A DNA stretch of 64,000 nucleotides, taken from assembly GCF_037042905.1 (NCBI RefSeq), contig NC_087251.1, positions 37,882,001-37,946,000 on the forward strand, given 5' to 3'. Source of the stretch: Lytechinus pictus. Its lineage: Eukaryota. The position numbers and the translations under genes are program-made. Positions 13,438 through 61,995 of the stretch are shown in pieces; positions within the stretch are counted from its first letter, which is position 1, and each line of letters begins with the position of its first letter. The notes beneath the pieces were generated by a model. The model was not told the DNA's origin and searched no databases. It was given only the letters and a program-made list of their open reading frames with translations.

Positions 13438-14990
13438 ATTTTCGGTTTCATTTCAATGCCATGCATGCAATGCGTAACCGTATGCGAGTTCCCCTCCCAC
13501 TCCCAAGCACGTCTACGGAAGATAGCAAGTACATAAAACGAGTGGAGTGCTGAACGAATCGCCAGTGGTTGTGTGCCTGCATTACACATTACTCACTCAT
13601 CCTCGCGCTAACGTGTGCATTTTCATATTCCATTTCATGAAAGAAACGGTGTGTACCGAAGCTATCATCTTCACTCTCTTCTATATTCCAATGAGTATAA
13701 CTACATCCACTGTAGTCTTGCACGCTATACTCATGGATGCGTATTGAATGTTAGTGTTTTGTTATTATTTTTTTTAAGTGGGAGTATCTTGAATAGTCCT
13801 TTCCTTTCAAAATTATTTATTTGCTATAATATTGTAAAATGTTCATAATATGTTTACTACAATTTAGCGTCTATGTTAAAATGAAACTATATGTCACTAT
13901 ATGGGCCTAGAACATCACTGAAATTCAGTAAAATAAAAAAGATATACTATCCATATACTCTGTGTATATCTCTTCCTCCCCCTCTCTCTCTCCCTCTCAT
14001 GCCCCCTCTCGCTTTTGTTATCTTCTTTTCTCCGGCTAATCTCTGTATTTCTCATCCTCTCTCACTTTCATTTTCCCTTTCTGTTCATCTCTCCCATTCA
14101 CCCATTTCACTCTCCAGTTTTTCGAATCCTTTCCTATGACTCTGACTCTTCATCTCTCTCTCCCCCTCCACCCTCTCTCTCTCACTCTCTTTCTATTTAA
14201 TTATGACCAGAAAGAATAATTCACGCTTAAAATCTCCTAATTCCAGAACCTTGAAGTGTCCTCGGGATGGTATGATCAAATTCGTTGTATGTGAAAAACT
14301 GTCGAAATCAGAGAATAAGAAACAAAATGATGCACTTGTTAATAGTACAAAATAATATAAAGAACACACTTATAACATGAATGTAGTTAAAGGGATCGAT
14401 GTATGCATCCTGCTAACACTCATCGTTTCTCTCAGCTTTTACACGTCAAAATAATGATTTCGTCATTGGAATCGGGTCTGGATTACAAGGCTGGTGATGA
14501 GGTGTGTTGCACACGTGTATGGGACATAATCTCCGATTGTGTCAGCTACATTACATCCCATATTCACGCTCGACATCACTTTTAATTACCATTTTTTCAT
14601 CAATTTTCCCCACCCCTTGCCGTTACTCATAGTACAGCCCTTCCTTCTTTTCATCTTCATGAAAGGCATCATTATTTTCAGTCACAAAACCCGCGTATTC
14701 AGTATCTATACAGGGCTTACAGGCTGAATAATGCTACACACCTTCCTGGTTAAAGGAATAAAATTGCACTCAACATTCAATTTTAAAGGGAAAATGTTGT
14801 TCGCCTTTTAACCGTTATTTTGGGGATAACTTTGGCATTCGTTAAAAAAAAAAAGGTATATAGGATCATTCTTGAGAATTATTATTAAGAAGAAGGGGTT
14901 CTTTTACCCAAATTTTGTTCCACTCTACCCTTTATAATTATATTGCAGCGAGTTGTGGAAAGTAACCGAGATAACAATCTTCTAATCCTA

Positions 14991-18806: not shown

Positions 18807-21800
18807 GTAAGTATCGGAAATTATATTTTGATCCTTTAAATTGTCGGGATTGAGCTGAGGTTTGGAGCGGGACTTGAGATCCTGCTTTGATCAGGGAATA
18901 AAAATAAGTAACGGTCCCACGTATTGCTTTCTACGCAGGCTTGGCAACGTCGGACTCGGATGGTCTAAACTAAAGTCCACCGCACACATTACGACTGTTC
19001 GCAATCGCGCAATCCGATTTCAGAATAAAATGTAGTAGAATTAGTGGGACTATGCTATCATCCTTCTTAGAATAAAAGCGAATTTATCTACCGTAGACGT
19101 AGTCGTACGATTGGTTACGATTTTAAACTAATTTGGCCTGTACTCTTAAATAAATGCTTACAATCTTTCAAAATGGTTAAATTAGTTTTCATTCAATTAA
19201 TTTTAACCTCAAATAAAATGATAATATACTGGTATTCCATTCACATTTTCAGAAAATGAGCAAACTGTCATAAGGTGTGCGGTGGCCTTAACGTAACGAC
19301 TAACGTTTAACTCAGTAACTGATCGAAGTTGACTGTTACTTTTATTCTAAGTTAGCAACAACAAAAAAAGTTAGTCTGGCACCAAATTTACCCACAACTC
19401 AGACGAAAATAGTCATATTACTATTAGCAGGCCCCAGGATATTGCTTGTTCACCCAATCCAATTGAACAATTAATTGTGTAATTATGGTTAAATAAAGTT
19501 TGGTGAATTTCATGAGAATGATCACGTGTTTGATATGATTGAATTAATGAAGTGTTCGGTAATACGATCCACTATCATATAGTCAGTAAGATTCCCAACC
19601 AAGATTCCTTAAACATTGTAGGCCTATTTGTTTTTGATTTTGGACTCGGACTCATCTCGGAAGATTGATGGATTGAGCTGAAGAATGAATTAGATGATGA
19701 TTTCTAGGAATCTAGCTAGTATTAAGATGATGCTAGTATTAGTGATTCATTATAATTATTCCTTATAAAACTTCTCTTTCAGAAAAATATCCCGAGATCA
19801 AGAGGCTTATGGGTTATGACACTAACATTGCGAACATCATGCTTGCCATGGTCCTGGTCCAAGTAATCACATCGTACCTCCTCCGCAACGAATCGTGGAT
19901 GACCATTGTCATCGTAGGCTACTGCTTTGGAGGGGTGGTCAATCATTCCATGACCCTAGCTCTTCACGAGGTTGGTCATAACTTGGCCTATGGGCATGCA
20001 AGACCATTGTGGAACAGGATAATAGGATTCATTGGTAATCTGGTGATTGGAGTACCTGTTTCAATCTCTTTCAAAAGATACCACCAGGATCATCATAAGT
20101 ATCAGGTAAAGATTTGTTGAATTATTCATTTTTTTTAAATTCTTTTAGCAGGATGACTCTATCTGTACTTTATACACTTTACCCTTTGAGGCCCAGCAGC
20201 ATAAATACAAATTTAACATTCATGAAGAGTAATGATACAAGTTCTATAAAATGGGTTTTTACTTTTTTACTCTCTCTTGAACTGCTGAAAGTGGCAGATG
20301 ACCAATTCGGATCCCCCCCATGACAAAAAGAAATTTGGAATAAAATGTTCTTGTATAGATTGTTTGAATATTCTTCTGCAAGAATCTTTTACCCTGAAGG
20401 AGGCAGATGTAACCTGAAGAAGAATATTTCCAATACTTCAGATTCGAATCTGGTACATCCAACTATTGTATATTTTGTAGATATGTTGACAATCTGTTTC
20501 TGTTTATACATGTTTTTTTTCTCTCTCTCTCTCTTGGATTGGGATTAGGAGGTAATCAATTATTGTTCCATTTGTGGTGTGCATAGACAAACCCTATTGT
20601 TTTATTATTTTAGATATTATATTCACTATTCAATTGACAGTTTCATTATTGTTTTTGTATAGGGTGAAGACACTTTGGATCCTGATATTCCATCAGAATG
20701 GGAGGGTATTCTCTTCCGAAAGCCATTTACTAAAGCTATCTGGATGCTACTACAACCAGCTTTCTATGCCTTCAGACCATTTATCAAGAGACCGAAGGTA
20801 ATTATATACAATTAACACACAGAACATATGGCATTCACTGCTCCGAGTGCTACGCCATCAGAGCTCTGAAGACACTTATAGAAGAAACTAAAAGCAAAAT
20901 TCTATCCATATCATTTGAAAAAATGAATTTTATACATTTTTTATTGGTAATGTTGGATTGTTTTATCAAGTCTTTGAGCTTATTTGGAATATTATCTTGA
21001 TGTTATGTTCCAATAACCTAAAACCAGTTAAAGTGATGAGTTGCACAAATAGACCCAAATACATTCACTGGAAGACATATACACGTATCAAATAATTTTC
21101 ATTATTGTGGTTGTGGAGTAACTCTGGTAAAAACTGAAAACTAAGGTTAGTCTGATTTCTGCCATTGACTTTAACACGGCAAAAACTCAGGTAAAAACAA
21201 CCTGAGTTTTCTCAGGTAAAAAGTTTTATGCAACAGGCCCAAGTAATATTAATGACTGCATTTTACTATGTGCAGTTAAGTCATATTCTGCGTTTCATTC
21301 ATATATTGTGGTCTATCGAATATTTTGCCAGGTCCCCAGCAAGCTTGAGGTCATCAACCTGATAGTGCAGCTGGTCTTCAATGCAGCCATCATCTACTTC
21401 TTCAGCCTGAAGGCGTACATCTATCTCATCCTGGGGTCCATCTTGACCATGGGACTTCATCCTCTAGCCGGTCACTTCATCTCGGAGCATTACCTCTATG
21501 AGGAAGGACATGAGACCTACTCGTACTATGGGCCTTTCAATTACATTGCCTTCAATGTCGGATACCATATGGAGCACCACGACTTCCCCAACATTCCTGG
21601 TTACAAACTTCCTCTGGTGAGTTTACTTACAGTCGTTGAATTGCACTGTTGCTTCCATTTGACTGTACAGACAGATTTGCATTGATATCCTCAAATATAT
21701 CATATTCATAATGGGGTTGAAAAGTATTCCCTTTCCCCTGATTTTGGCAATGTATGATTGCGTCATTGTACATTTTTACATCTCCCGGCCATGAAAAACT

Positions 21801-22240
21801 ACCATTTCCATGTGCTTTTTTGTATGAGCATGTTGTCCACCTTGTAATGACTGTGCCAAAAAAAAGGGCAAGTTTGTGTTAATTAAAGTTAAAATAATGG
21901 AAGTTGTCTTTACACCCATGTCTTTACTATTTAATCTATTTCACTTGCCAAATGATATGGGATTAAGAGTGAATTTGGATTGTACGATTTGTTTGAGGAA
22001 ACATGTCCATGATTTGTTTAGATATTATCAATAAATGACATTTTAATTTCTTTTCTCTATATGTGTACACAGATCAGGAAGATCGCCCCAGAGTACTACG
22101 ATCCTCTTCCAACTCATGAATCCTTTGCAAAAGTCGTTTGGGACTTTGTCATGAGCCCCAAGATCGGACCTTATGCTCGCGTGAAGCGACCCAACTCTAT
22201 TGACCCCAGGTCCATTGACCCCTGGGATATGCCTCATTGA
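18725..22240 (+). CDS. DEGS1: Sphingolipid delta(4)-desaturase / dihydroceramide desaturase DES1, 5 exons, 330 aa
   Basis: join(18725-18806,19783-20105,20663-20797,21332-21616,22073-22240) = 993 nt, all introns GT-AG and in phase. N-terminus [34 protein letters not shown] (Lipid_DES domain, Gly2 myristoylation site). His boxes HEVGH, HQDHH, HMEHH. C-terminal IAPEYY...[13 protein letters not shown]1 vs DEGS2 orthology cannot be resolved in an invertebrate. Confidence 0.95.
18974..19288. mobile_element. PIF/Harbinger-type MITE in DEGS intron 1
   Basis: TIR agtccaccgcacacattacgac / gtcataaggtgtgcggtggcct, flanked by TAA on both sides. Confidence 0.75.
19783..20105 (+). CDS. DEGS1: DEGS exon 2
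   Basis: tttcag|AAAAATAT...CAG|GTAAAG; contains HEVGH and HQDHH. Confidence 0.93.
20663..20797 (+). CDS. DEGS1: DEGS exon 3
   Basis: tag|GGT...AAG|GTAATT; [15 protein letters not shown]...[10 protein letters not shown]. Confidence 0.92.
21332..21616 (+). CDS. DEGS1: DEGS exon 4
   Basis: cag|GTC...CTG|GTGAGT; [13 protein letters not shown]...ETYSYYGP...[12 protein letters not shown]. Confidence 0.93.
22073..22240 (+). CDS. DEGS1: DEGS exon 5 (terminal coding)
   Basis: cag|ATC AGG AAG ATC GCC...CAT TGA. Confidence 0.92.
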
Positions 22241-23704
22241 TGTTCCTGTTTGTGATCGTTTGTTGGGTGTGTCTTTCTGCAATTGTATCGCTAGATTTCT
22301 ACATAATTAATAGATAATTTTGTATATAGAATGATCAGGGTTGATCAAGTCAGGTGCTGAATCAAGTTTATGATTCATTTAAATCCAATCCGATGAACTC
22401 TTTGATAAGTGATTAAGCCTAAATTGGGTATTACAAGAGAGTTCCATCCCAAATCAAGCATAAGTCCCAAAATCTTGATTTAGTGCAAATTTGTTGATTT
22501 GTATACAGTTCGAACTACTCATTTTGCTTGATTCTGGAAATTATGCTCGACTTGTAATGTAACACAAGTTTCTTGCAGCGCCCCATAAGTTAGGAATATT
22601 TATTTGCAAAAACACTGATGTAAACATGGAAAAAACAAAGGGATAGTTCATGAAACCATACAACTCCCTTTGCACTCTCAATTATGTAAACAGTGAGTTC
22701 ATGAATAATAATGATAATAGTGATATCTTATTGAACGCGCACACCGTCCAGAGATGCTCATGGCGCTAGCGCAGCAACAGTTCCTTTAGATGCAAATATT
22801 TTATACACATACATTACAAACAGCTACTTAGATATAAATAGAAATCTTAAATCACTGAAACTGGGTATTGGATATTATTTACATTTACTACATGTAAATA
22901 GAATGTGAAGAAAGGTGACTCTACATGTAAATTCTCTTGGAAAACAGGAATTTGTTCAACTTTGGCAAAAATGTGTCTAAGAACATGTAAATAAGACATG
23001 TTTTGCATAATCTGGTCTGAAGTAATGTTTAGAATTAAGTGATATGTAAATTTATGGAAGGTCAGCTTTTGCAGAATCTGCTGTGTGTCTGATGTCAAAT
23101 TTTGTATAAAACTTGAATTGTCTGAATGGTTTGTATTCTTTAAAGATTAAGCTTTAAAATGCATTGTGAAAAGCAGTGTGAATACTAGTCCTTGGGTAGG
23201 ATCTCATTTCATTTGGTAATTTCCTTGTTTTAAAAATTAATTCAGGGCAACTATCTCTTCTTTTTTATCAGAGAAGTAAAAACCAACTACTTGTAGATCA
23301 AGTGAATACAAACCTCATTTCATTGTCCTTCTTTTCACTGTGTGGTCATCATTGTATGTGGAGTGTTTTGTTAAAACAGTACTATGTTGCAGACACCTCC
23401 CCAAAACAAAAGGCACCTCACATTTCAGTGAGGTAAAGTATGATTAATTAACATGAAAAATCTATGTGTAATTAAGATCAAATCAAGATGTTGGGAGTTC
23501 TCATATCCATTTAGATAAGTATATATTTTTTTCAATGAGGTGATGGAATTTTCCCCATAGAGTGGGGGTATTGTGCTCTCTGTGTGGAATACTAGATAGC
23601 TCTAATTGCTCAGGTAATGAACTGTGCTCACGAATAGTATTGTTATTGCATAATTCAATGTCTGGTGCATTTTCATAATAGGTTTAAACTAGAGGCTAGA
23701 GACC

Positions 23705-35996: not shown

Positions 35997-36207
35997 TTAC
36001 ATCTCTGGCCTGTGAGACATGTGGTTTCCAAGGTCTTCATGGAATCCTTTGGCGGAGTAAGATTGCCGTGGACTACCCCGAACGCGAGGACTGTCCCTGT
36101 GAGCAAAGCGCCCTCGTTGAGGACTCCTGCCAGGAGGATGTCCTATCATCTGAACGGCTTCGGCTGCAAGATCTTCTGCTCTTTGAAACCCATTGGGAGT
36201 GGACAGT
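35997..36207 (-). CDS. lark: lark/RBM4 distal alternative terminal coding exon
   Basis: ttcccccatcacag|A LSTPNG...GRSPQRGRFAHRDSPRVRGSPRQSY...RPEM*. Phase 2 and open for 69 codons. An in-frame alternative acceptor is at 36246. Confidence 0.6.
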
Positions 36208-39200: not shown

Positions 39201-42200
39201 GCCTTATTAACACAATCTTCTATTGACAATAAGATATCGATATTATCTCTAGAATTGTCATCTCAAAATATAGAAATATGGTGTAAATGGAGATAAATAT
39301 ACCAAGCAAGCCAACATTTTGATTTGAAGCATGATTTCATTCGATAATCAAATGGAGTGATGAAATGATAGCCACAATTACCCAAAGTTTGTTTCATTGT
39401 TTTATAGTCTATATGAAAATGAAGTTCATTGGCCTTCAAATACTCTTGTACAATCATGACCCACTTTGATATTTTTTTCTTTAAGACTTTATCTCATTTC
39501 ATACATGTACAGAGCAGCATGAGTGCTCGATGGAAACCATTCAGAGTGGGTACATCCTAGCATATGGCCAAATATATAGCTGTGCCAATTTCACAGTATT
39601 TACACTAAAATTCACCTGAAATCATAATACATCCATCTACATATAGCACACCTAGTTCATGTTCAACTTCACTTAATTCTCAATATATCCTATTTTTACC
39701 TAGGCTAAAGCTAAGCTGCAACATAGGTACTAAGCGGGGGGGGGGGGGGGATTACATGGGGGTTTTGGGGGGGATTTTGACCCCGAAATACTCAAAAGAG
39801 CCCTGGAAAATCCCCATTCACTGCAATGTTAAAGTTTATCCAATATTGCAGATTGAGGCAGTAGATCATGAAAAGCAGCCCCCCAAAATAAATAAAAAAT
39901 ATATATAAATATTTTTTGCTTGTACTAGAGCACTCAAGGAATTAATCCTCCCGGAATCATAAAAGGAATAGCCCAACACACAAGTCAGAAGCTGGGAATG
40001 CTCTATTTCGGAAGTTTAAATCAAGTGTTTGGGGTTCTTTCTTTCAAATTTGCAGTATACCTTCAAAATAAAAGGATGTTTGTTTGTTTTTTATTTCAGA
40101 AAGAGTAAGGTGTACATAATGATCCAAATACAAGAGAAAGTGGATGAAAAAAAAAATAATAATAAATCCTAAATAAATAAAGATATGAATAAATAATAAA
40201 CAAATAAAATAAATAAATAAACAAGTAAGTTAAGGTTGAGAGTTGTACTCACTGACTCCTGGACTCCGCATATCTATCAGCTGGAGGGTAGTCATAGTAG
40301 TCCCTGTTATATGACAGAACAAACCAACATTTGAATATTATTATATAGATGATAAATGTGTTATGAGTGCAATGAATCATTTCATATTTCACTGAATGAA
40401 CAATTCTGTCCATTGCACAAATGTTAAGTCTGATAATGGTGAAGTCTGAAACATCGACTAGGAATAAAAAACTAAATGGCCATTTAAATATGGCATTGCT
40501 ATATTAAATTTTGTATTGGCAACTTGATTAGATTTCGAAAAGTGGCAAGGACAACTCCCCCATTGGTCATGTACATTTATGTATTAGGACTCTCTCTCCT
40601 GTACTGGTAGTGTTTCCCTTTATATGCTTTGAGTAGTAATAAAAATAGAAAGCATATTATCATGAGTCTTAAAGGAGAATGAAACCCTTGAAACCAGCTT
40701 AATTCATATCAAAGAGAAAAATCAAAGAAACATGTTGTTGAAAGTTTGAGGAAGATTGAATGAATAATAAGAAAGTTATGAGCATTTGAATATTGAGATC
40801 ACTAATGCCATGTAGATCCTCCCATTGGCAATGCGACCAAGATCTATGATGACACACACGTACAACTCCCTCATTACTTTAGTACTTATTTCACTTATAT
40901 TCTCACTTTTATAGTCTATCACAAGGTAAGGTGTTCTCTTTATGAGAGGACAAGTACAGAGGTTTCACATTATATCATTGATGAATTGTTTGTCATATGA
41001 TTAGAATGAGCAAAAAGAGATGTTTTGGGGTATATTTTCAGTGTCCAAAAGGGGAGAGTTGTTCATCTGTGACATCATAGATCTTGGTCGCATTGCCAAT
41101 GGGAGGATCTCCATAGCATTAGTGATCTCGACATTCAAATGCTCATAACTCTTCTATTTCTAGTCCTATTTTACTCAAACTTTTGTTGATCTTATTCTTT
41201 GATTTTTCTGCTTTCACAAAAGCCAACTTACTCCAAGAGTTTCATTCTCCTTTAATAAAAGATAATAATTGCAATTTCCAAAAGATACAAAGCGATTTGA
41301 GAAAAACTTCTTGTTTTTTTTAAGATAATTTTCTAGTCATTTTGTGTATGGGAACAAAAATCAAATGGTCTTTACCCTAAACACTACGACATCACATATG
41401 TGGCCAATATGACATCCCCATACATATAGAAATTGCAACTTAATACAAGTTTTCAAGATTGTTTCTCTGGTTTTTCTTTTTTTTTTTCCTTGACAAAACA
41501 ACTTTTCATTTGGGTTGGAATCTGGTTTAAATTGTTAATGTCTGTTCACGGTTTTCTGTTGACAATTCCAGCAAGTCAGTCCTCATGAACATTGCTACTT
41601 CAATAGTTTGTCTATTTTGAGTGATGAAAGGTGCACAGATTATAGTAAAGTAAACCCTCAATGTGAATTAAGAACTTCACAAACACAGTGCAAACTCAGG
41701 GGAATATCTGGGGGAGTGTTTATGAAGCAAATAATGCTTTTCCGCTGACAAATTTGCTCTCAACCAATCAGATGCAAGGATTTCAGTTGCTTATAACAGT
41801 GGTCAGTGAAAATCAATGACCATTTGCTTCATAAAAATGCTCCCCAGTGATAAACAAACGTGCATAACTCGACAATCTGGGGCTGTTTCACTGCAACACT
41901 TTGCCATGCATTATAACCAACATGCAACACATAACTACATTGATGACTGAGCAATAGCGCAGGGGGAGCGTTTCATAAAGCTGTTCGTAAGTTAAGAGCG
42001 ACTTTAAGAACTGGTGATCCTTTCTTAACATGCAAAACCATCGCTTATGAATATACTATTTGCCATAAGAAAGGATCTCCAGCCTTAACTTGTTGCTCTT
42101 AACTTACGAACAGCTTTATGAAACACCCACCAGGTCCCACAAGCAAATAAACTAATTGAATGCAATTATTTTGAATAAGTGCAGATTTATATCACACTAA

Positions 42201-45200
42201 ACTCTTTGTACATGCAACAACCCCATGGAGTTGTAATGCACAAGTACAGTCAAATCTGTCTTAGCAGCCATCTGTTGTCACCTTCACTGTCTCCCATTGG
42301 ATAGGAATATGTATGATTGAAACTGTCTCAAAAGGCCCCTAATTTTACAAAAAGGTAGTACATGTACATTAAAGTTTAAATAAGTCAACCTTCCATCCAT
42401 AAATAGAATAATTACCTAAGGCACCTTACCAAAATTACCTTACCAGTGCTGTGTCTTTCATGCAGGAATCATGCAAACATAAAATTAAATTTCATTGCTA
42501 TTCCCAACATGAAATCAAGGTACCTTTCATGGCAACTTTTCTATATGATTCCATATTGCTATGTCTATAAAAAACATGAGCAATGATGGATGATTCAAGA
42601 CACTTGTATGATTCCTGTGAGAAAAACCTTGCTCTGTCTTGTGGGTAAGGTGCTGAAGAAATTTCATCCAAGATTATAAATGCAAAGATTGTATTTGCCT
42701 CTTCTTACCAAATTTGCCTTTGAGCCAAAGACAATGGAGTTAAAAATGAATTTCTTGAATATACATAACAATTTACAGTGTTAATAAATATAAATTAGTT
42801 CACAAAAACATGCTTCACACTGAAGTTAAATCAATTATTGAAGGTCAAATTCATTTTGACATGCACACATTAAAATGGGTTCAAAATTCAAACAATTCTC
42901 GTTGCAGCCATTACAGAGTTGCAACTTTCACAGATTTTTTCAAGGCCTTGTGACTTGCAATAAATTTATATGAAATAAAGCTAAGGCAAAAAACATAGAA
43001 GTTAATTCGAAATTTAAGGCCACTGTTATGTGGGCAAAATAATTTGATGGCGCAAGCATACAAATAATTTTACACGAATAGACAGACTGCGTTCATAAAA
43101 GTTGAGCAACATTTATAGAAAACCAGGGGATTTTATTATCAAATCACTGTCCTTTTTCTATGCAAGCAAGGGAAAACTTTGGGATGATTTGCTAACTGCT
43201 ACAATCAAACTCGATAAGATAAAATCAATTCCATGGGATTTAATTGGTTTGACAGTTGCCTTCTTCTGCCTGATTGTACAGTCACACCAATGAGACCGAC
43301 TCCAGACCGATCAAAGCTATTACATTATTTCCAATGGCACATCATTGGTCCGTTTGGAGACTGTTTCGTTAGTGTGTAATGGCTACAACGTTGATTACAA
43401 CAACAACAAATGCTAGTTTTTTTTTTGGGGGGGGGGTGATGCAAGAAAATATTGCATTCAATTGCAAATTTCCGTTGTAGTTTGACAACTGATTAATCAC
43501 TTTTAATTATTGGTATTGATTTATTTACTTGTTGCAAGAAGCAAAGTGCAAATTTGCAATTAATTGCAAGACATATGATGATTTTTTTTTTACCTATAAA
43601 AGACAAACAATTGATTGCAAGTTTCTTGCAACACCCCATTAGTATTAAAACAAACATGTTATTAAAATCAATGCAATGAAAATATTAGTCTTGTTAGAAC
43701 CCACCTAGGAGGTGGAGGTGGAGAATCACGTCTCCTGTACCTTGGTGGGGTCAAGGGTCGCCTTCCTGGTGGCGGGCTTCGGCTCCTTGTTCTGTAAGGG
43801 TCGCGGGGGTACGGGTCACGGGAGTATTCATGGTACGGATATGGAGGCGGTCGCCTGTTAACATACAGGGATGATACAAAGTTGTTGAGTTATGCATAAA
43901 GATCCAGGACTCCATAATTAATACAAAGGTTAGCGAATCATCATGGGCTGATCTTTACAACTGATTGCATTGATTATTGTGTATGATCAATTATAAATAT
44001 CTGCTCCACAATCAATCAATACATTGTATGTTACAGGGTATCAATATCGAGTGTCTACTTGTATGCATAGACTTTATGTGCTTAATAAATCCTGAAAGAA
44101 AATGTGTAATTAATGACAAACTGGCATGGGATATTAAAACATTATTTATTTTTTCTTTAAGTATAATCTATGCAACTACATTTGTGATCAAATTAGCTTT
44201 AATACAATTTTCGTTCACTACGATAAATCCAATGACTTACTAAAAGTTGGATAAAACCTTGATTTTCATTGGCTGCTGAGCTCCGTTACCATGGTAGTTA
44301 CCACACTGGCGAATTGGTTATAATTGTGTTTATGAAATAGGGGCCCTATTACAGATCAATACTATCCATAAAAATATGATTATCAAAATGGTGTACCTGT
44401 AGTAGTCCTCATAGTAGCGATCGTAGTACGGGTCAGGTGGTGGCGGTCTGCGAGACCCATAATCTCCGTATTCCCTGTCTTTGTATTCTCCAGGGTGATC
44501 TCGACTTCCTCCTCGACCACCTCTGAAACCTCCTCCCCCTCCTCCTCGACCGCCTCCATCACGGCCACCACCTCGACCACCACCTCCGCGTCCGCCTCGG
44601 CCTCCCCTTCCGCCGCCGCCTCCACGGCCGCCACCTCCTCGGCCGCCACCTCTGCTTCCCCTTTATAAAAAACATTAATAGAAAGAGATAAATGTTGGTG
44701 AAACAAAGGCTTGGGGTAGTGTTACTTTCATGAAGCACTTTGTCAAGAATTAGTTTGTCCTGACGTCTGAGCCAATCAGAAGCAAGGTTTTCAGTAGCCT
44801 ACAGCTGTCAGTGAAAACCGTTACTTGTGTCATGGAATGCTCAATAAGTATCATATAAATACTCTGTGATGAAATGGCTTAAAATATGGACAACAGGGTT
44901 AACCCAAATACATCTTACAAATTACAAGACACTGATCAAGTTACAACAGAATTTTACAGCTTATTCTATGATACATGTACATGTACGTAAAATTAACATT
45001 GATTAAATAAGCACTCTGATAGCCTGATTTATTTCAACTTATTTGGATACAGATTTGCCCATCTTATGGGGCATCGCAAGAAAACCACAATCAATTTCAA
45101 GCCCATTAGAAATCACAGAATCAATGCCTTTGAAATCATTGGTAATTTTGTACTTGACAAAAAAGGATGTGCAAACTGATTTACTACAGCTAAAATTGAT

Positions 45201-47815
45201 CTTGCAAATTTAAATTGCAGCAAAACTTTGTAATTGATTGCATATAATTTCTTGCAACACCCTCTACGAGCTTAATTATCCTGTCCATTTATAATATCAA
45301 CACTGGAAAGCCTCATCACATTAACATACAAATAATCATCATCATAATAATAACGATATGAATAATGCTAATGATTTATTGGACTTAAATCCACTCTGTA
45401 GAGTGCTCAAGGCACTTTCCTAGAAATCAAGAAGGATGTTAAGAATTGAACAGAAATGTTTTACTTGTATCTTGAAAGTCTTAGTTTTTCAATGTCTTCA
45501 AAAAGGCTTATCCATAACTTAAATGATGAGTGGACAAACGACCCCCCCCCCCAGATTTTGGCGATGACTTAAGTATACAAGAAAAATAGTTTTGTTTGTC
45601 CAAGGAGATATTAAAAATTGCATGCTGTTTATCCAGTATTGTTCTGTATATATTAGATTGACTTTGGCAGCATGGTAGCCTGCCCTATTTCCGAAAAAAT
45701 CACCAAACCGATATATTGACCGGGATAGAGGCAAGCGTTAATCTCGAGGTGCAGCACTGGACGCGCGGCGCGCCAAGTCTGCTTACCTCCCGTTATCACG
45801 GCAGTCGCGAGAGAAGTGCCCCATTTTACCGCACGAGAAGCATTCTCCACTGTTGCCCACACCAGTCGTTTTGTGCACGGTGGATGTGGACATTTGAACC
45901 TGGATAACGTTCCCCAGGAAATCAGTCTTGTCTAGCTGAGTGACCGCCTCTTGGCATTCTGTTTCTGTTGCCATGTGCTTTAATAAGAGAAGGGGCCAAT
46001 GATTGGGAATAAGAAGGTAAATGATCAGAATCCGAGGGATAAGACCAAGATAAGAGAACAGCAAAGCTTCTGGTCCACACAATCACCGACTACTTTGGCT
46101 ATGCTATAGCCAAAGCAAATGTGTTTTAATTCCGAAACCGAACATGCATCTTTCGACAGGATAGCACCTACAACACGTCCAATGGATGACAGAAGCTTTG
46201 CTGCTCTCGAATATGATTTAAAAAAGAATTTACTATGAGACTTACGGCTCTTTTCGTTCAGTTGAGGTAGAGTGTTGTACCCTGATTGTATTACCATACA
46301 ATCTATGACCACCAAGTTTGTTAACTGCTTCCAAAGCCTCCTCTATAGTTGACATGTGCTAAAACAAACAATTTAAAACCATCGAAGCAATATCAAGAAC
46401 AAGATTCTTAAAACTGAATTTCCCTTTTACCTGCCTCACAAAATAACATGAGATGAATCCAAATTCAAATAAAATGCCATCTAGACAAAGGTGGAAAATG
46501 CAATTTAGTGCATTTTTTACCCATAAATTTTGTTCAAATTAAGCAACAAATATATTCAGATCACAAAATAATAGAGCTTCGAACTGTAATGCTGGAAATT
46601 CACCAATAAGACATATCTGGATATTAATTTGTGAACATATCTTGGAACATTTTAATGAGGAAGAAATTGAGTCGAGGCATTGCATTAAAGAGTCTAACAT
46701 TCATACTTTTATATGCTTTTCAGTTCACACTCCATTTCCTTAACCCCATACTATCCTTAACCCCGCAATATCTTTTTTGGTTTCACACTGTCTTTCTTAA
46801 CCACATACAATTTGCTTAGCCAGGGTTAAAGCCGTAACCGCGGACTATCGCACAGCTCATGAATATTGATGATTTTGCCACAGAGAGCGTGATTATTGTC
46901 CAATTTTGACTTCTGTAATTGGCTAATGCTTAGCCCCACTCTTCCTTAGCCCGGTTTCATTTCACACTGCATCTCTTGGCACCGCAATTGTGGTGCTAAC
47001 ACCCAATTAGCTTGCTATCCCTGCTTTTTTGCAGGGCCAGATAGTACCATACTAATTACTGTGCTAGCCCACTAGTTTGCTAACACATGAAGAAAAACGA
47101 AGTGGGCTAAGCTTAACCCCGGGATATTGGTGGGGCTAAGCCCCCCCCCCCCAAGCCCCACCAATTTCCCAGGGTTAAAGAAAATGTGTGCAGGGTGAAA
47201 AGCATATTATATTCATTAAACATTATTTTATTTCAAAGGTTGTACATGAATGTTTTAATTACAGACCTGCCCTCCCATTAATGGCACTAGCTTTGCATGA
47301 AAAAAAGAACATTTCATTTAATCGAGTATGAACATTTTTCCCCCCTATTTCGTAAAAAAAAAACACAATTTGCTCTACTTCATTAATGGTTAATACCCTA
47401 CTATATTTCTTCAATGATTATTAAAGATTACTCCAATTTACATCTAAAAGGTGCTTATCAATACAAACTTTGCATATTAATAAGTCACAAATTTTCATTT
47501 TCATATGCTTGTTGTACTCTGTAATTTGTAAAATTATCTATATTTGCAACATTTGTACCTAAATTTCCAATAGCATTTACAATTTATTTCTCATGACATT
47601 TATGGTATTATATAGATTTATACATATATACCAATGCTTGTCATCAAGTTATTTGAAAATGAAAAGAAATAAACTGAAACTATAAAACTCACCACAAATC
47701 CATAATTCTTGAGAACATCACATTCTACTACTTTTCCTACTGTTTGGAAAAGCTCCTTCAGGTCATCGTTTGTAACTCCTTGTGGCACATTACCCACGAA
47801 CAGCTTTTTCGCCAT
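35997..47815 (-). CDS. lark: RBM4/lark-family RNA-binding protein (RRM + optional CCHC zinc knuckle + RGG + RS/PY-rich tail), alternatively spliced
   Basis: Exons 47815-47693, then 46358-46246 OR 45977-45787, then 44660-44397, 43854-43705, 40303-40253, then 39013-38959(stop) OR 36207-35997(stop). All introns GT-AG and phase-compatible. KLFVGN...ECDVLKNYGFVH and VQMSTS...GVGNSGECFSCGKMGHFSRDC match RBM4/lark. Confidence 0.85.
38959..39013 (-). CDS. lark: lark/RBM4 proximal terminal coding segment
   Basis: cccctacag|C YPPPRARYSPPRQTSAF*, resembling the vertebrate RBM4 end RARYSAF. Confidence 0.72.
40253..40303 (-). CDS. lark: lark/RBM4 51-nt exon
   Basis: ataacag|G DYYDYPPADRYAESRS CA|GTGAGT. 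Confidence 0.8.
40673..41251. mobile_element. Kolobok-type MITE in a lark intron
   Basis: TTAA|aggagaatgaaacccttg ... caagagtttcattctcct|TTAA; near-perfect inner arms gatcctcccattggcaatgcgaccaagatctatgatg. Confidence 0.85.
41960..42133. mobile_element. Palindromic MITE, same family as 3716-3891
   Basis: gtttcataaagctgttcgtaagttaagagc / gctcttaacttacgaacagctttatgaaac. Confidence 0.75.
43705..43854 (-). CDS. lark: lark/RBM4 R/P/Y/S-rich exon
   Basis: 150 nt, phase 2 to 2; RPPPYPYHEYSRDPYPRDPYRTRSRSPPP. Confidence 0.87.
44397..44660 (-). CDS. lark: lark/RBM4 RGG-box exon
   Basis: 264 nt, phase 2 to 2; GSRGGGRGGGGRGG...RRPPPPDPYYDRYYEDYY. Confidence 0.88.
45787..45977 (-). CDS. lark: lark/RBM4 alternative exon 2b (RRM2-type C-half + CCHC zinc knuckle)
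   Basis: cttctcttattaaag|CAC ATG...HMATETECQEAVTQLDKTDFLGNVIQVQMSTS...CFSCGKMGHFSRDC, ends AG|GTAAGC; phase 0 to 2. Confidence 0.92.
46054..46208 (-). other. Structured intronic RNA element between exons 2a and 2b
   Basis: 19-bp stem 46208-46190 / 46072-46054 and 12-bp inner hairpin 46117-46091. The only non-Watson-Crick pairs are G-U on the minus strand. Confidence 0.7.
46246..46358 (-). CDS. lark: lark/RBM4 alternative exon 2a (RRM1-type C-half)
   Basis: tgtttgttttag|CAC ATG...HMSTIEEALEAVNKLGGHRLYGNTIRVQHSTSTERKE, ends CC|GTAAGT; phase 0 to 2. Confidence 0.85.
46714..47204. mobile_element. MITE in the lark intron between the first coding exon and exon 2a
   Basis: ta|tgcttttca ... tgaaaagca|ta; internal ttcacact and ttaacccc/ttagcccc repeats. 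Confidence 0.6.
47693..47815 (-). CDS. lark: lark/RBM4 first coding exon (RRM N-half, RNP2 and RNP1)
   Basis: gccATGG; MAKKLFVGNV...KNYGFV|GTGAGT (phase 0). The exon starts at 47850 after tattttattag, so an upstream non-coding exon exists. Confidence 0.92.
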
Positions 47816-48800
47816 GGCTGAAATATCTATCCCTCACAATCTTCTTTCTCCTAATAAAATATAGAGAGGTTGGATTCATGAGAATAGTAACAAAGCTAAG
47901 TCAATATAACAAAGTATGCAGCCCAGACGTATCACATCATGGCGCACACAAGTTGTATACCACGAATGAGCACACAACAATCATGCAATAAAACACAAAA
48001 TTTTTATATGAAGCTCCAAAATGTGTTTAAAGAGCTGGGGCAGACCCAGGGGTGAAAACAAAACGACCGATCGAGTATCCATCCCACAAGTGAAGTTCAT
48101 TTTCTCGTTGGTGCATATCGTCTGCTGCTACTCATCATGAGTTGATTTGGATACATACAATATTTGATTCGGACATATTTTACTTGTTTGTAAGTACGGT
48201 ACAGTACATGCAATTACTATTTTTAATTATTGTATTTTGAAGTTGATGAGTGAAGAGACTCTGCCGTGGACTCTTTTTCATTGTTTGGCCTTTGGGTGGT
48301 GCACCGTGCAGGTGCAAATGAATGTGAGTTGACTAACAGTTACGACAGGGATTCACGTTTGTTCCACTCTCCATCACCGGCGCAATTCCCCTAATTTTCC
48401 TTCTCCCATGTCGCTTTGTTGTTCACTAGACCTAGAATCTTCCTTATCAATATCTTCTTCAACAACATTTGTTTTCGAAATCCAAATCTAGATAAAACTT
48501 CTGGGTTTTCTTCCATTTCATGATCGAACAACTCAGTGACAGTGTGGACTTTCGCACGTTTACTAGCATTCGCAATAGGTTTTGAACGCAAGTGGAGCTT
48601 GAAGTGGGAGAGCTATTCACGTCTCTGGTACCATCATACACGTCATCAAATTTGAGTCAATTCAGAGGCCGATGCGAGGCATATTTCAGAGGGGAATTTT
48701 AGCGCTTTTTAATTGGCGATTTCCACCTTACGTATTATTTTCGTTATTTTCAAATGACCTAATGATAATCCCCACACCATTACCTTTCCATTGATATAAG

Positions 48801-53095: not shown

Positions 53096-53215
53096 ACTCA
53101 CCGAAATTCATAAGAACAACGTCTTGACAGTGACACACGCACACGCTTTCGGCACCTTCAACAAACGCGGTAATCACGTGTCCGGATATGACACACGCGT
53201 TGCATTGTGGGAGAA
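53096..53215 (-). promoter_or_regulatory. Candidate promoter and non-coding first exon of the lark gene
   Basis: ZNF143/SBS-like TCCCACAATGCAACGCG (53212-53196), E-box CACGTG (53175-53180), CpG-rich, and donor TCG|GTGAGT (exon ends 53102) that could splice to the acceptor at 47850. Confidence 0.5.
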
Positions 53216-53836: not shown

Positions 53837-54010
53837 NNNNNNNNNNNNNNNNNNNNNNNNNNNNNNNNNNNNNNNNNNNNNNNNNNNNNNNNNNNNNNNN
53901 NNNNNNNNNNNNNNNNNNNNNNNNNNNNNNNNNNNNNNNNNNNNNNNNNNNNNNNNNNNNNNNNNNNNNNNNNNNNNNNNNNNNNNNNNNNNNNNNNNNN
54001 NNNNNNNNNN
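53837..54010. other. Assembly gap (174 N)
   Basis: Run of n. Confidence 1.
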
Positions 54011-60928: not shown

Positions 60929-61995
60929 TGCTGGGATGCGATATGTTGGTGAGGAATACTGGCAGCTCCTTGTGATGAGGACTGGTAGACTGTTGGCCTA
61001 TTGAAACTGTCATGATTCTGCATGGTACCTGATTCCGTGCTCCAAGTGGGGAAGCTTTGATTCTCCTGATGCCAGTTGCCAGCAGAGTAATTATAATCAT
61101 GTGCAGGGGAACCGTTAGGTATGTTGGGGCAGTCACGTCGTAGATGTCCCTTATGACCACAGCTGAAGCATCGTCCATCAGTCCTCTTTCTCTGAGGCTT
61201 TCCTCCTTTCAGTCTGGCTACTTCTCCCCTAAGTTGCTCCAACTCCGTCATTATAGCTTTCTGTTGTTCTACTACCTGTTGCACAAGCATGGAATCTTTC
61301 ATGACTGCCCTTCCAACTTCGATATCTGCTTCTCTGACTCTGGGCCTCTGAGTGGTGGCAGTCTCCTGAAAGAGTTTGAGGGCTTCCTCACGAATCTTGG
61401 CGAATCCATTGGTTTCATGCATCATCTGTATTCGCCTCAACTCTCTCCTCACCCAAGCCTCCCGGGCACCATTGACAAATTGATCACTTAAGGTCTTGTT
61501 TTTCAACTGGCTTAAAGCTTCTCCTTGAGCTTGTGTAGTGGCAGCTTTTTCCATCTTGTTGTAGGTGCGAATCAGGGCACGGCTGAAGTCACAAAGTGAT
61601 TCTCCATCTCTCTGTATGCGATTATGAAACTGACTACTGAGGGTCTGTGTGGTTTCCTGATAGCCAAAGCACAATTTCAGACGACTTACTATTTCATCAA
61701 AATCCTGTCTCTTTGATTCACTGAGACACATTATTTCCTCTCGTGCTGGTCCTGAAAGGTGATCTAGCAACAGTCGAGCTTTGCTACTCATTTCCATATT
61801 TTGGTTAGCAGTTACTCCATTAAATTCTTCAAGCCATTCTGACAAGGACATATCATCCGCATGATGTGGCATCCCTCGGAATTTTGGTAAGTTGCTCTGT
61901 AATATACTCTGTAATCCAATTGAACGGCGGAAGAATTGGGACAAAACATCCATATTCTCAGTCGTAGCTGATGATAAACTCGATCTGGTTTCCAT
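60919..61995 (-). CDS. gag: Gag (PNMA-like capsid, single CCHC knuckle), 358 aa
   Basis: First ATG at 61995 (METRSS); LPKFRG...WLEE...LSGPA; CFSCGHKGHLRRDC. Confidence 0.92.
   Translation of the reverse strand: METRSSLSSATTENMDVLSQFFRRSIGLQSILQSNLPKFRGMPHHADDMSLSEWLEEFNGVTANQNMEMSSKARLLLDHLSGPAREEIMCLSESKRQDFDEIVSRLKLCFGYQETTQTLSSQFHNRIQRDGESLCDFSRALIRTYNKMEKAATTQAQGEALSQLKNKTLSDQFVNGAREAWVRRELRRIQMMHETNGFAKIREEALKLFQETATTQRPRVREADIEVGRAVMKDSMLVQQVVEQQKAIMTELEQLRGEVARLKGGKPQRKRTDGRCFSCGHKGHLRRDCPNIPNGSPAHDYNYSAGNWHQENQSFPTWSTESGTMQNHDSFNRPTVYQSSSQGAASIPHQHIASQQEN

Follow-up and report, generated by a model that had tools for sequence, protein, structure and literature searches.

A probable sea urchin lark/RBM4 orthologue whose single RRM is completed by either of two mutually exclusive exons, one carrying a zinc knuckle

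The stretch of DNA analysed here, referred to throughout as the window, comprises 64,000 nucleotides (nt) of the sea urchin Lytechinus pictus (contig NC_087251.1, positions 37,882,001 to 37,946,000) and carries, on its minus strand, a gene whose closest relatives are lark/RBM4 proteins (‘RNA-binding protein lark-like’ or ‘4.1’), with one gene per species in our searches. Working along the coding sequence (CDS) from its 5′ end, an exon for the N-terminal half of an RNA-recognition motif (RRM), which we call e1, precedes two homologous exons, 2a and 2b, after which comes an exon rich in RGG. We are reasonably confident that this is the urchin orthologue of lark/RBM4 and that its single RRM is completed by one of these two homologous, adjacent and mutually exclusive exons; the 2a isoform then consists of an RRM and an RGG tail with no knuckle between them, and the 2b isoform of an RRM, a CCHC zinc knuckle and the same tail.

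The first coding exon, whose 41 residues finish on NYGFV, in phase 0 and ahead of a gtgagt donor, encodes strand 1, helix 1 and strands 2 and 3 of the fold, including RNP2 and most of RNP1; it matches the Pfam family RRM_1 with an E-value of 2.3e-10. Exons 2a and 2b both open on CAC ATG (His-Met), their borders reading ttttag/CACATG ... GAGCC/gtaagt and ttaaag/CACATG ... GGGAG/gtaagc respectively, and share 50% identity over 36 amino acids (aa); a tblastn search of the 64-kb window recovers the match at E-values of ~1e-5 to 4e-6, well beyond chance. The knuckle (zf-CCHC match, E 6e-07) is limited to the 2b isoform, and the two exons differ in length by 191-113 = 78 nt, or exactly 26 codons. 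Neither exon length (113, 191 nt) is divisible by three, and inclusion of both exons, or of neither, breaks the reading frame: with just one of the two exons the frame continues open from e1 into the RGG exon, whilst e1+2a+2b runs through 14 codons of 2b before reaching a stop (93-aa product), and skipping both frameshifts the RGG exon, with a stop inside it (74-aa product). No sequence resembling an RRM N-half was found in the 268-nt intron between 2a and 2b, nor did the gene's remaining introns contain one, and the only run of N in the window lies outside the gene stretch concerned.

Four RNA sets bear on how these exons are used: X21 and X23, which are stranded, rRNA-depleted and from organism A; X24, cDNA from organism B; and X1, a set of contigs. 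The stranded libraries agree with the minus strand for this gene. Reads joining e1 to 2a (47693 to 46358) number 90 in X21, 127 in X23 and 261 in X24, with 29, 39 and 28 joining e1 to 2b (47693 to 45977); exon 2a continues into the RGG exon in 102, 82 and 62 reads, and 2b in 35, 30 and 1, the X24 reads mapping poorly on the RGG exon. Counts into and out of the alternative exons balance. Judged by the e1 junctions, 2a is the major form (76–77% in organism A, ~90% in organism B) and 2b the minor one; one X1 contig links e1, 2a and the RGG exon. Joints from 2a to 2b and from e1 to the RGG exon are both absent from the 15 joints listed, and none of the loose ends listed falls at the donor of 2a or at the acceptor of 2b. 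RNA depth within the 2a–2b intron (46060–46243) is essentially zero, which excludes a hidden exon between 2a and 2b. Weighing against strict exclusivity, low-level 2a-to-2b or e1-to-RGG splicing may occur among the 29 weaker joints beyond the 15 listed.

At the corresponding locus of Strongylocentrotus purpuratus, in a stretch free of N, the exon order is again e1, 2a, 2b and RGG exon, with an intron of 246 nt separating 2a from 2b. Both isoforms are already annotated in RefSeq for this sister species, under ‘RNA-binding protein 4.1’: isoform X1 (329 aa) is the 2b form and isoform X3 (303 aa) the 2a form. Between the two urchins 33 of the 37 residues of 2a are identical (89% at the nucleotide level), as are 54 of the 63 of 2b. 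Our literature search found no published description of this switch or of its two isoforms, yielding background papers only.

AlphaFold models were built for the N-terminal parts of both S. purpuratus isoforms, with family alignments. In each model a strand at residues 3–8 is followed by a helix (16–24), two strands (29–35 and 38–43), a second helix (46–56) and a final strand reaching residue 70; block-mean values of the predicted local distance difference test (pLDDT) are 80–91 over residues 1–70 for both isoforms, with the knuckle at lower confidence. The exon border falls inside strand 3, each alternative exon adding the last two residues of RNP1 (His-Met), helix 2 and strand 4, such that, in the predicted structures, either exon completes the RRM. 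Strands 1 to 3, which make up the RNP2/RNP1 face, are shown to be constant between the isoforms; the exon swap changes helix 2, strand 4, the linker and the knuckle. Sequence searches of the PDB with 2a and 2b returned generic knuckle and RRM matches only, and the entry for RRM2 of RBM4B (2dgt) matched both exons weakly, with no discrimination between them.

On the strength of the junction reads, the annotated S. purpuratus isoforms X1 and X3, and the structure models, mutually exclusive use of exons 2a and 2b is confirmed: each gives rise to a single-RRM protein, with the knuckle present only with 2b. The earlier note, made from the letters of the window alone, had described precisely this arrangement—a single N-half ending in NYGFV, two alternative exons of 113 and 191 nt running from phase 0 to phase 2, an intron between them devoid of an RRM2 N-half, and frameshifts upon joining or skipping both—and its coordinates and reading frames were reproduced here; of the five junctions that it proposed be counted, the four that use one exon only are well supported by reads and the fifth, from 2a to 2b, is not among the joints listed, and both single-RRM forms that it proposed be modelled are predicted as complete domains. 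The findings that it named as fatal to its proposal did not materialise: transcripts do use 2a, there are direct joins of e1 to 2b, and no in-frame RRM2 N-half appears. Its protein lengths fared less well: the 26-aa difference between isoforms stands, but in place of 251 and 277 aa we find 228 and 254 aa for proximal-end proteins that read through exon 5, or 234 and 260 aa for those that read through exon 6. Positions of all features are collected in Table 1.

Table 1. Features of the lark/RBM4 locus and its surroundings; positions are those of the window
Feature	Positions	Strand	Length and phase	Remarks
5′ untranslated region (UTR) exon	53102..53190	-		3′ end 53102, donor gtgagt; 5′ limit provisional
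First coding exon, e1	47693..47850	-	CDS 47815-47693, 123 nt	ATG at 47815
Exon 2a	46246..46358	-	113 nt, phase 0 to 2	C-half of the RRM, comprising helix 2 and strand 4; no knuckle
2a–2b intron	45978..46245	-	268 nt	
Stem in 2a–2b intron	46190-46208 and 46054-46072	-	19 bp	arms given for the minus-strand RNA
Exon 2b	45787..45977	-	191 nt, phase 0 to 2	RRM C-half and CCHC zinc knuckle
Block aligning to S. purpuratus	45702-46402		723 nt	76% identity
RGG-rich exon	44397..44660	-	entry phase 2	entered from 2a or 2b
Exon 5	43705..43854	-		Pro/Arg/Tyr-rich; second in-frame donor 43741; read-through leads to the proximal stop
Exon 6, distal-end isoforms	40252..40305	-		approximate borders; tblastn with S. 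purpuratus protein and X1 loose ends
Last coding exon, distal-end isoforms	36000..36203	-		approximate borders; tblastn with S. purpuratus protein
Read-rich intronic stretches	43608; 44254-44303; 44766-44798; 46730-47200			probably dispersed repeats or transposon fragments
Desaturase-like gene	19773-22243	+		Lipid_DES / FA_desaturase
Run of N	53837-54010			
CCHC knuckle-like match	61129-61176	-		far from the lark gene

The outer parts of the gene are less sharply drawn. The 5′ UTR exon rests on 99 X23 reads that extend past the exon-2 acceptor into letters matching 53103–53121, at a distance of 5.25 kb from the first coding exon; the read consensus and the assembly differ by a short indel within this exon, and because of that difference the 30-nt consensus of the loose ends matched the window only after shortening. 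Towards the 3′ end, the junction from the RGG exon into exon 5 (44397 to 43854) is carried by 101, 161 and 123 reads in X21, X23 and X24, respectively. Exon 5 apparently has two in-frame donors 36 nt apart (43705 and 43741), and X1 contigs depart at 43704 and 43740 with the same continuation, matching exon 6 near 40305. In several intronic stretches, reads map by the hundred to both strands, showing many mismatches as well as loose ends; these stretches probably represent dispersed repeats or transposon fragments and not lark mRNA. A sphingolipid-desaturase-like gene lies tail-to-tail with the lark gene, and this downstream neighbour is common to the window, S. purpuratus and the sea cucumber locus; the shared neighbour supports the orthology of the urchin and sea cucumber genes. 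A separate CCHC knuckle-like match elsewhere in the window (GRCFSCGHKGHLRRDC) may be the remnant of a retroelement gag gene.

The region of the exon pair is unusually well conserved. At residues shared between the window and S. purpuratus, identical codons are used in 46% of cases in e1, 82% in 2a and 89% in 2b, so that synonymous sites in the alternative exons are far more conserved than in the constitutive one. The aligned block extends from ~45 nt upstream of 2a, via the intron and 2b, to ~85 nt downstream, whilst the remaining introns of the gene gave no alignment to S. purpuratus. Within it, the 2a–2b intron is 73% identical between the two urchins and contains a 19-bp stem present in both, with one compensatory change (C-G to U-A) and five further pairs that extend it; folding of the whole intron gives z = -4.3 in the window and -1.4 in S. 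purpuratus. The acceptor of 2b is weak (aaag) and conserved between the urchins. Given this weak conserved acceptor, the synonymous conservation of both exons and the conserved stem-bearing intron, we infer that the choice between 2a and 2b is actively regulated, and the stem would be a candidate splicing-control element for that choice. As regards a docking/selector arrangement, the stem lies within the 2a–2b intron and no competing second pairing partner was identified. Steric hindrance was rejected as the mechanism of exclusivity, the intron measuring 268 nt with ~80 nt from the donor to the likely branch point even with the stem formed. The premature stops predicted for transcripts with both exons, and with neither, fall >100 nt upstream of later junctions; frame incompatibility together with predicted nonsense-mediated decay could serve as a back-up for exclusivity.

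Among relatives, the gene of the starfish Acanthaster consists of exon A (RRM1-N, ending in phase 0), exon B (RRM1-C, 133 nt, ending in phase 1), exon C (RRM2-N, 122 nt, phase 1 to 0), exon D (RRM2-C plus knuckle, 188 nt, phase 0 to 2) and an RG-rich exon E starting in phase 2. Its introns occupy the same ...FV/HM... positions as those of the urchin, and its exon order is that of the urchin plus one 122-nt exon. Two RRMs are likewise present in the Patiria and Asterias genes; amongst the echinoderm and hemichordate relatives compared, only starfish have them. Crinoid, brittle star, sea cucumber and hemichordate genes contain only an N-half exon and a C-half-knuckle exon (types A and D), and the urchin 2b form matches this, the only form seen in these groups. 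Their introns are short or relic-free, and a search of them for relics of 2a-, B- or C-type exons found none. A UTP25 neighbour is common to the crinoid, hemichordate and mussel genes; for the starfish and brittle star genes, UTP25/desaturase synteny gave no placement within the flanks covered. In Acanthaster (L003), a transcript without exons B and C (14414–14931; 133+122 = 255 nt) would stay in frame, encoding a single chimeric RRM plus knuckle.

Further afield, gains of RRMs recur: the two RRM C-halves of Argonauta pair together (support 100/98), both Patella C-halves group inside molluscs, a planthopper protein has three RRMs, and a metagenomic protein has three RRM-knuckle units. The linker intron of Patella is in phase 0 and precedes the K of KVYVGN by eight codons; that of starfish is in phase 1 and precedes the K of KLYVGN by three. 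Differing in both position and phase, they are not the same intron. Second RRMs arose independently within molluscs, and RRM duplication within lineages is demonstrably common in the lark/RBM4 family. Tick isoforms also occur without a knuckle.

Could the urchin arrangement be an artefact, or one of its exons mere regulation? Loss of an RRM2 N-half exon from the assembly by collapse or at a gap, with a two-RRM protein as the true product, we regard as hardly credible: direct e1-to-2b and 2a-to-RGG junction reads occur in three raw-read runs, the 2a–2b intron has zero depth and no N, the loose ends listed include none at the 2a donor or 2b acceptor, and the independent, N-free S. purpuratus stretch has the same layout. 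Somewhat less remote, yet still very unlikely, is the suggestion that functional protein comes from only one of the exons, the second serving as a regulatory or ‘poison’ exon or amounting to splicing noise. That double inclusion leads to a premature stop, that conserved regulatory exons are frequent in genes for RNA-binding proteins, and that 2b use is low (~10%) in one run set all lend it some colour, but the frame is open with each exon alone, both exons are conserved as protein between the urchins (33/37 and 54/63 residues), each gives a confident RRM model, and 2b is the ancestral-type form and 2a the majority form.

The origin of the pair is harder to settle. We lean slightly towards a tandem duplication of a C-half-plus-knuckle exon followed by loss of the knuckle from the upstream copy: the exon would have duplicated in the urchin lineage or somewhat earlier, and the upstream copy would then have lost exactly 26 codons, those of the knuckle, by using or acquiring a donor of equal phase further upstream. 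The earlier note had instead seen in the locus a two-RRM gene rebuilt by loss of its RRM2 N-half exon, with 2a resembling an RRM1 C-half. In the fuller form of that account weighed here, an eleutherozoan gene of the starfish type lost RRM2-N in the urchin lineage, leaving RRM1-C (2a) and RRM2-C (2b) to compete for one N-half; the orphaned RRM1-C would have stayed in use because its donor shifted to phase 2, and 2a and 2b would be non-sister half-domains. We consider this unlikely, if worth taking seriously. The existence of two-RRM starfish genes, with Acanthaster intron positions matching those of the urchin, speaks in its favour, as do the single gene per species in searches and the lack of a knuckle in 2a, as in RRM1-C; skipping of B and C being in frame, their repeated loss in other classes would be mechanistically easy, and the distance between 2a and 2b is that of orthologues across echinoderm classes. 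Its cost is about four independent losses (hemichordate, crinoid, brittle star and sea cucumber), as against two gains for duplication; no relic of RRM2-N exists in either urchin. Starfish exon B moreover ends in phase 1 and would, after loss of C, be out of frame with D and E, requiring a new donor for 2a, which in fact ends in phase 2 as does 2b and unlike B. Nor is a two-RRM ancestor established by the molluscs, whose two-RRM forms are lineage-specific and whose Patella intron differs. Duplication is the more parsimonious route, needing two gains where a two-RRM ancestor would need four or five losses. These counts rest on the accepted echinoderm tree.

Direct comparison of the half-domains does less to separate the two. 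Exon 2a is 44–50% identical to 2b, 42–44% to starfish D and 36–39% to starfish B; it is no closer to RRM1 C-halves of starfish or fish than to RRM2-type C-halves, and it is the starfish RRM1-C that lies nearer to urchin 2b (ungapped BLOSUM sums of 73–87) than to 2a (62–70). A tree of C-halves (33 columns, short sequences) is mostly unresolved and three approximately unbiased (AU) tests reject none of the arrangements, including 2a with starfish RRM1-C (p 0.36), which the exon-loss account can claim, and 2a with 2b (p 0.27). A special resemblance of 2a to RRM1 C-halves is not supported, the description of 2b as a C-half with CCHC knuckle holding good; and with most ambulacrarian relatives single-RRM and 2a lacking special affinity to RRM1-C, the derivation from a two-RRM gene is not supported either. 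Three points nonetheless weigh against duplication with knuckle loss. Exon 2a is about equally distant from every C-half type (BLOSUM sums of ~60–72); the starfish gene is exactly that of the urchin plus one RRM2-N exon; and at equal rates the split between 2a and 2b would date to around the urchin–starfish split, before urchins and sea cucumbers parted, so old a split requiring either that sea cucumbers lost 2a or that 2a went through a burst of change.

Set beside RBM4 and Drosophila LARK (RRM-RRM-CCHC with a low-complexity tail), the urchin gene shares the RNP motifs and an Arg/Gly plus Pro/Tyr/Arg-rich tail, and its 2b form shares the linker and knuckle that follow the RRM (...STS.VHK.PG.G..GEC..CG..GH.SR.C); it differs in never having two RRMs, in its one N-half and in a knuckle made optional by exon choice, most ambulacrarian relatives also being single-RRM. 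A survey of RBM4 homologues did not cover echinoderms and reported single-RRM, knuckle-less forms only in nematodes (PMC3602429). With mutually exclusive exons of tandem-duplication origin, the subject of two reviews (PMC9013439, PMC9741552), the urchin pair has in common adjacency, homology, equal phases and inclusion of one exon at a time, as well as lengths that are not multiples of three, double inclusion that breaks the frame, and isoforms that are conserved and well expressed; it departs from them in that its copies differ by 26 codons, toggling a whole zinc knuckle, and in that the swapped unit is half a domain. The human isoforms RBM4-FL and RBM4-S, which arise by skipping of exon 3, are reported to differ in localisation and to have opposite effects (PMC8971511). 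There, as in the urchin, alternative splicing keeps the RRM part and drops a downstream part, but the human cassette skip removes the rest of the protein, whereas the urchin swap keeps the RGG/Pro-rich tail in both forms. The RBM4-like gene of Mytilus has the RRM-plus-RGG architecture of the urchin 2a isoform and adjoins UTP25 like the knuckle genes of crinoid and hemichordate; no knuckle was found at the Mytilus coruscus locus (L007, 14864–17152), whilst the urchin gene keeps the knuckle and knuckle-less options together.

Present evidence does not establish that mutually exclusive exons can evolve by a new route; if the exon-loss account were true, such exons could originate by exon loss. 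What the locus does provide is a clean case, verified by RNA, of mutually exclusive exons that exchange half an RRM and toggle a zinc knuckle in a regulator of splicing and translation. In sea urchins, RBM4 mRNA is reported to be among the messages whose recruitment to polysomes at fertilisation is strongest (PMC5961321). The conserved intronic stem is a tractable candidate for the control of its splicing, and the isoform pair amounts to a natural experiment on the contributions of helix 2, strand 4 and the knuckle to target choice. For the family as a whole, domain number in lark/RBM4 is far more variable than the textbook RRM-RRM-knuckle arrangement: most ambulacrarians have just one RRM, and duplications confined to individual lineages have occurred repeatedly.

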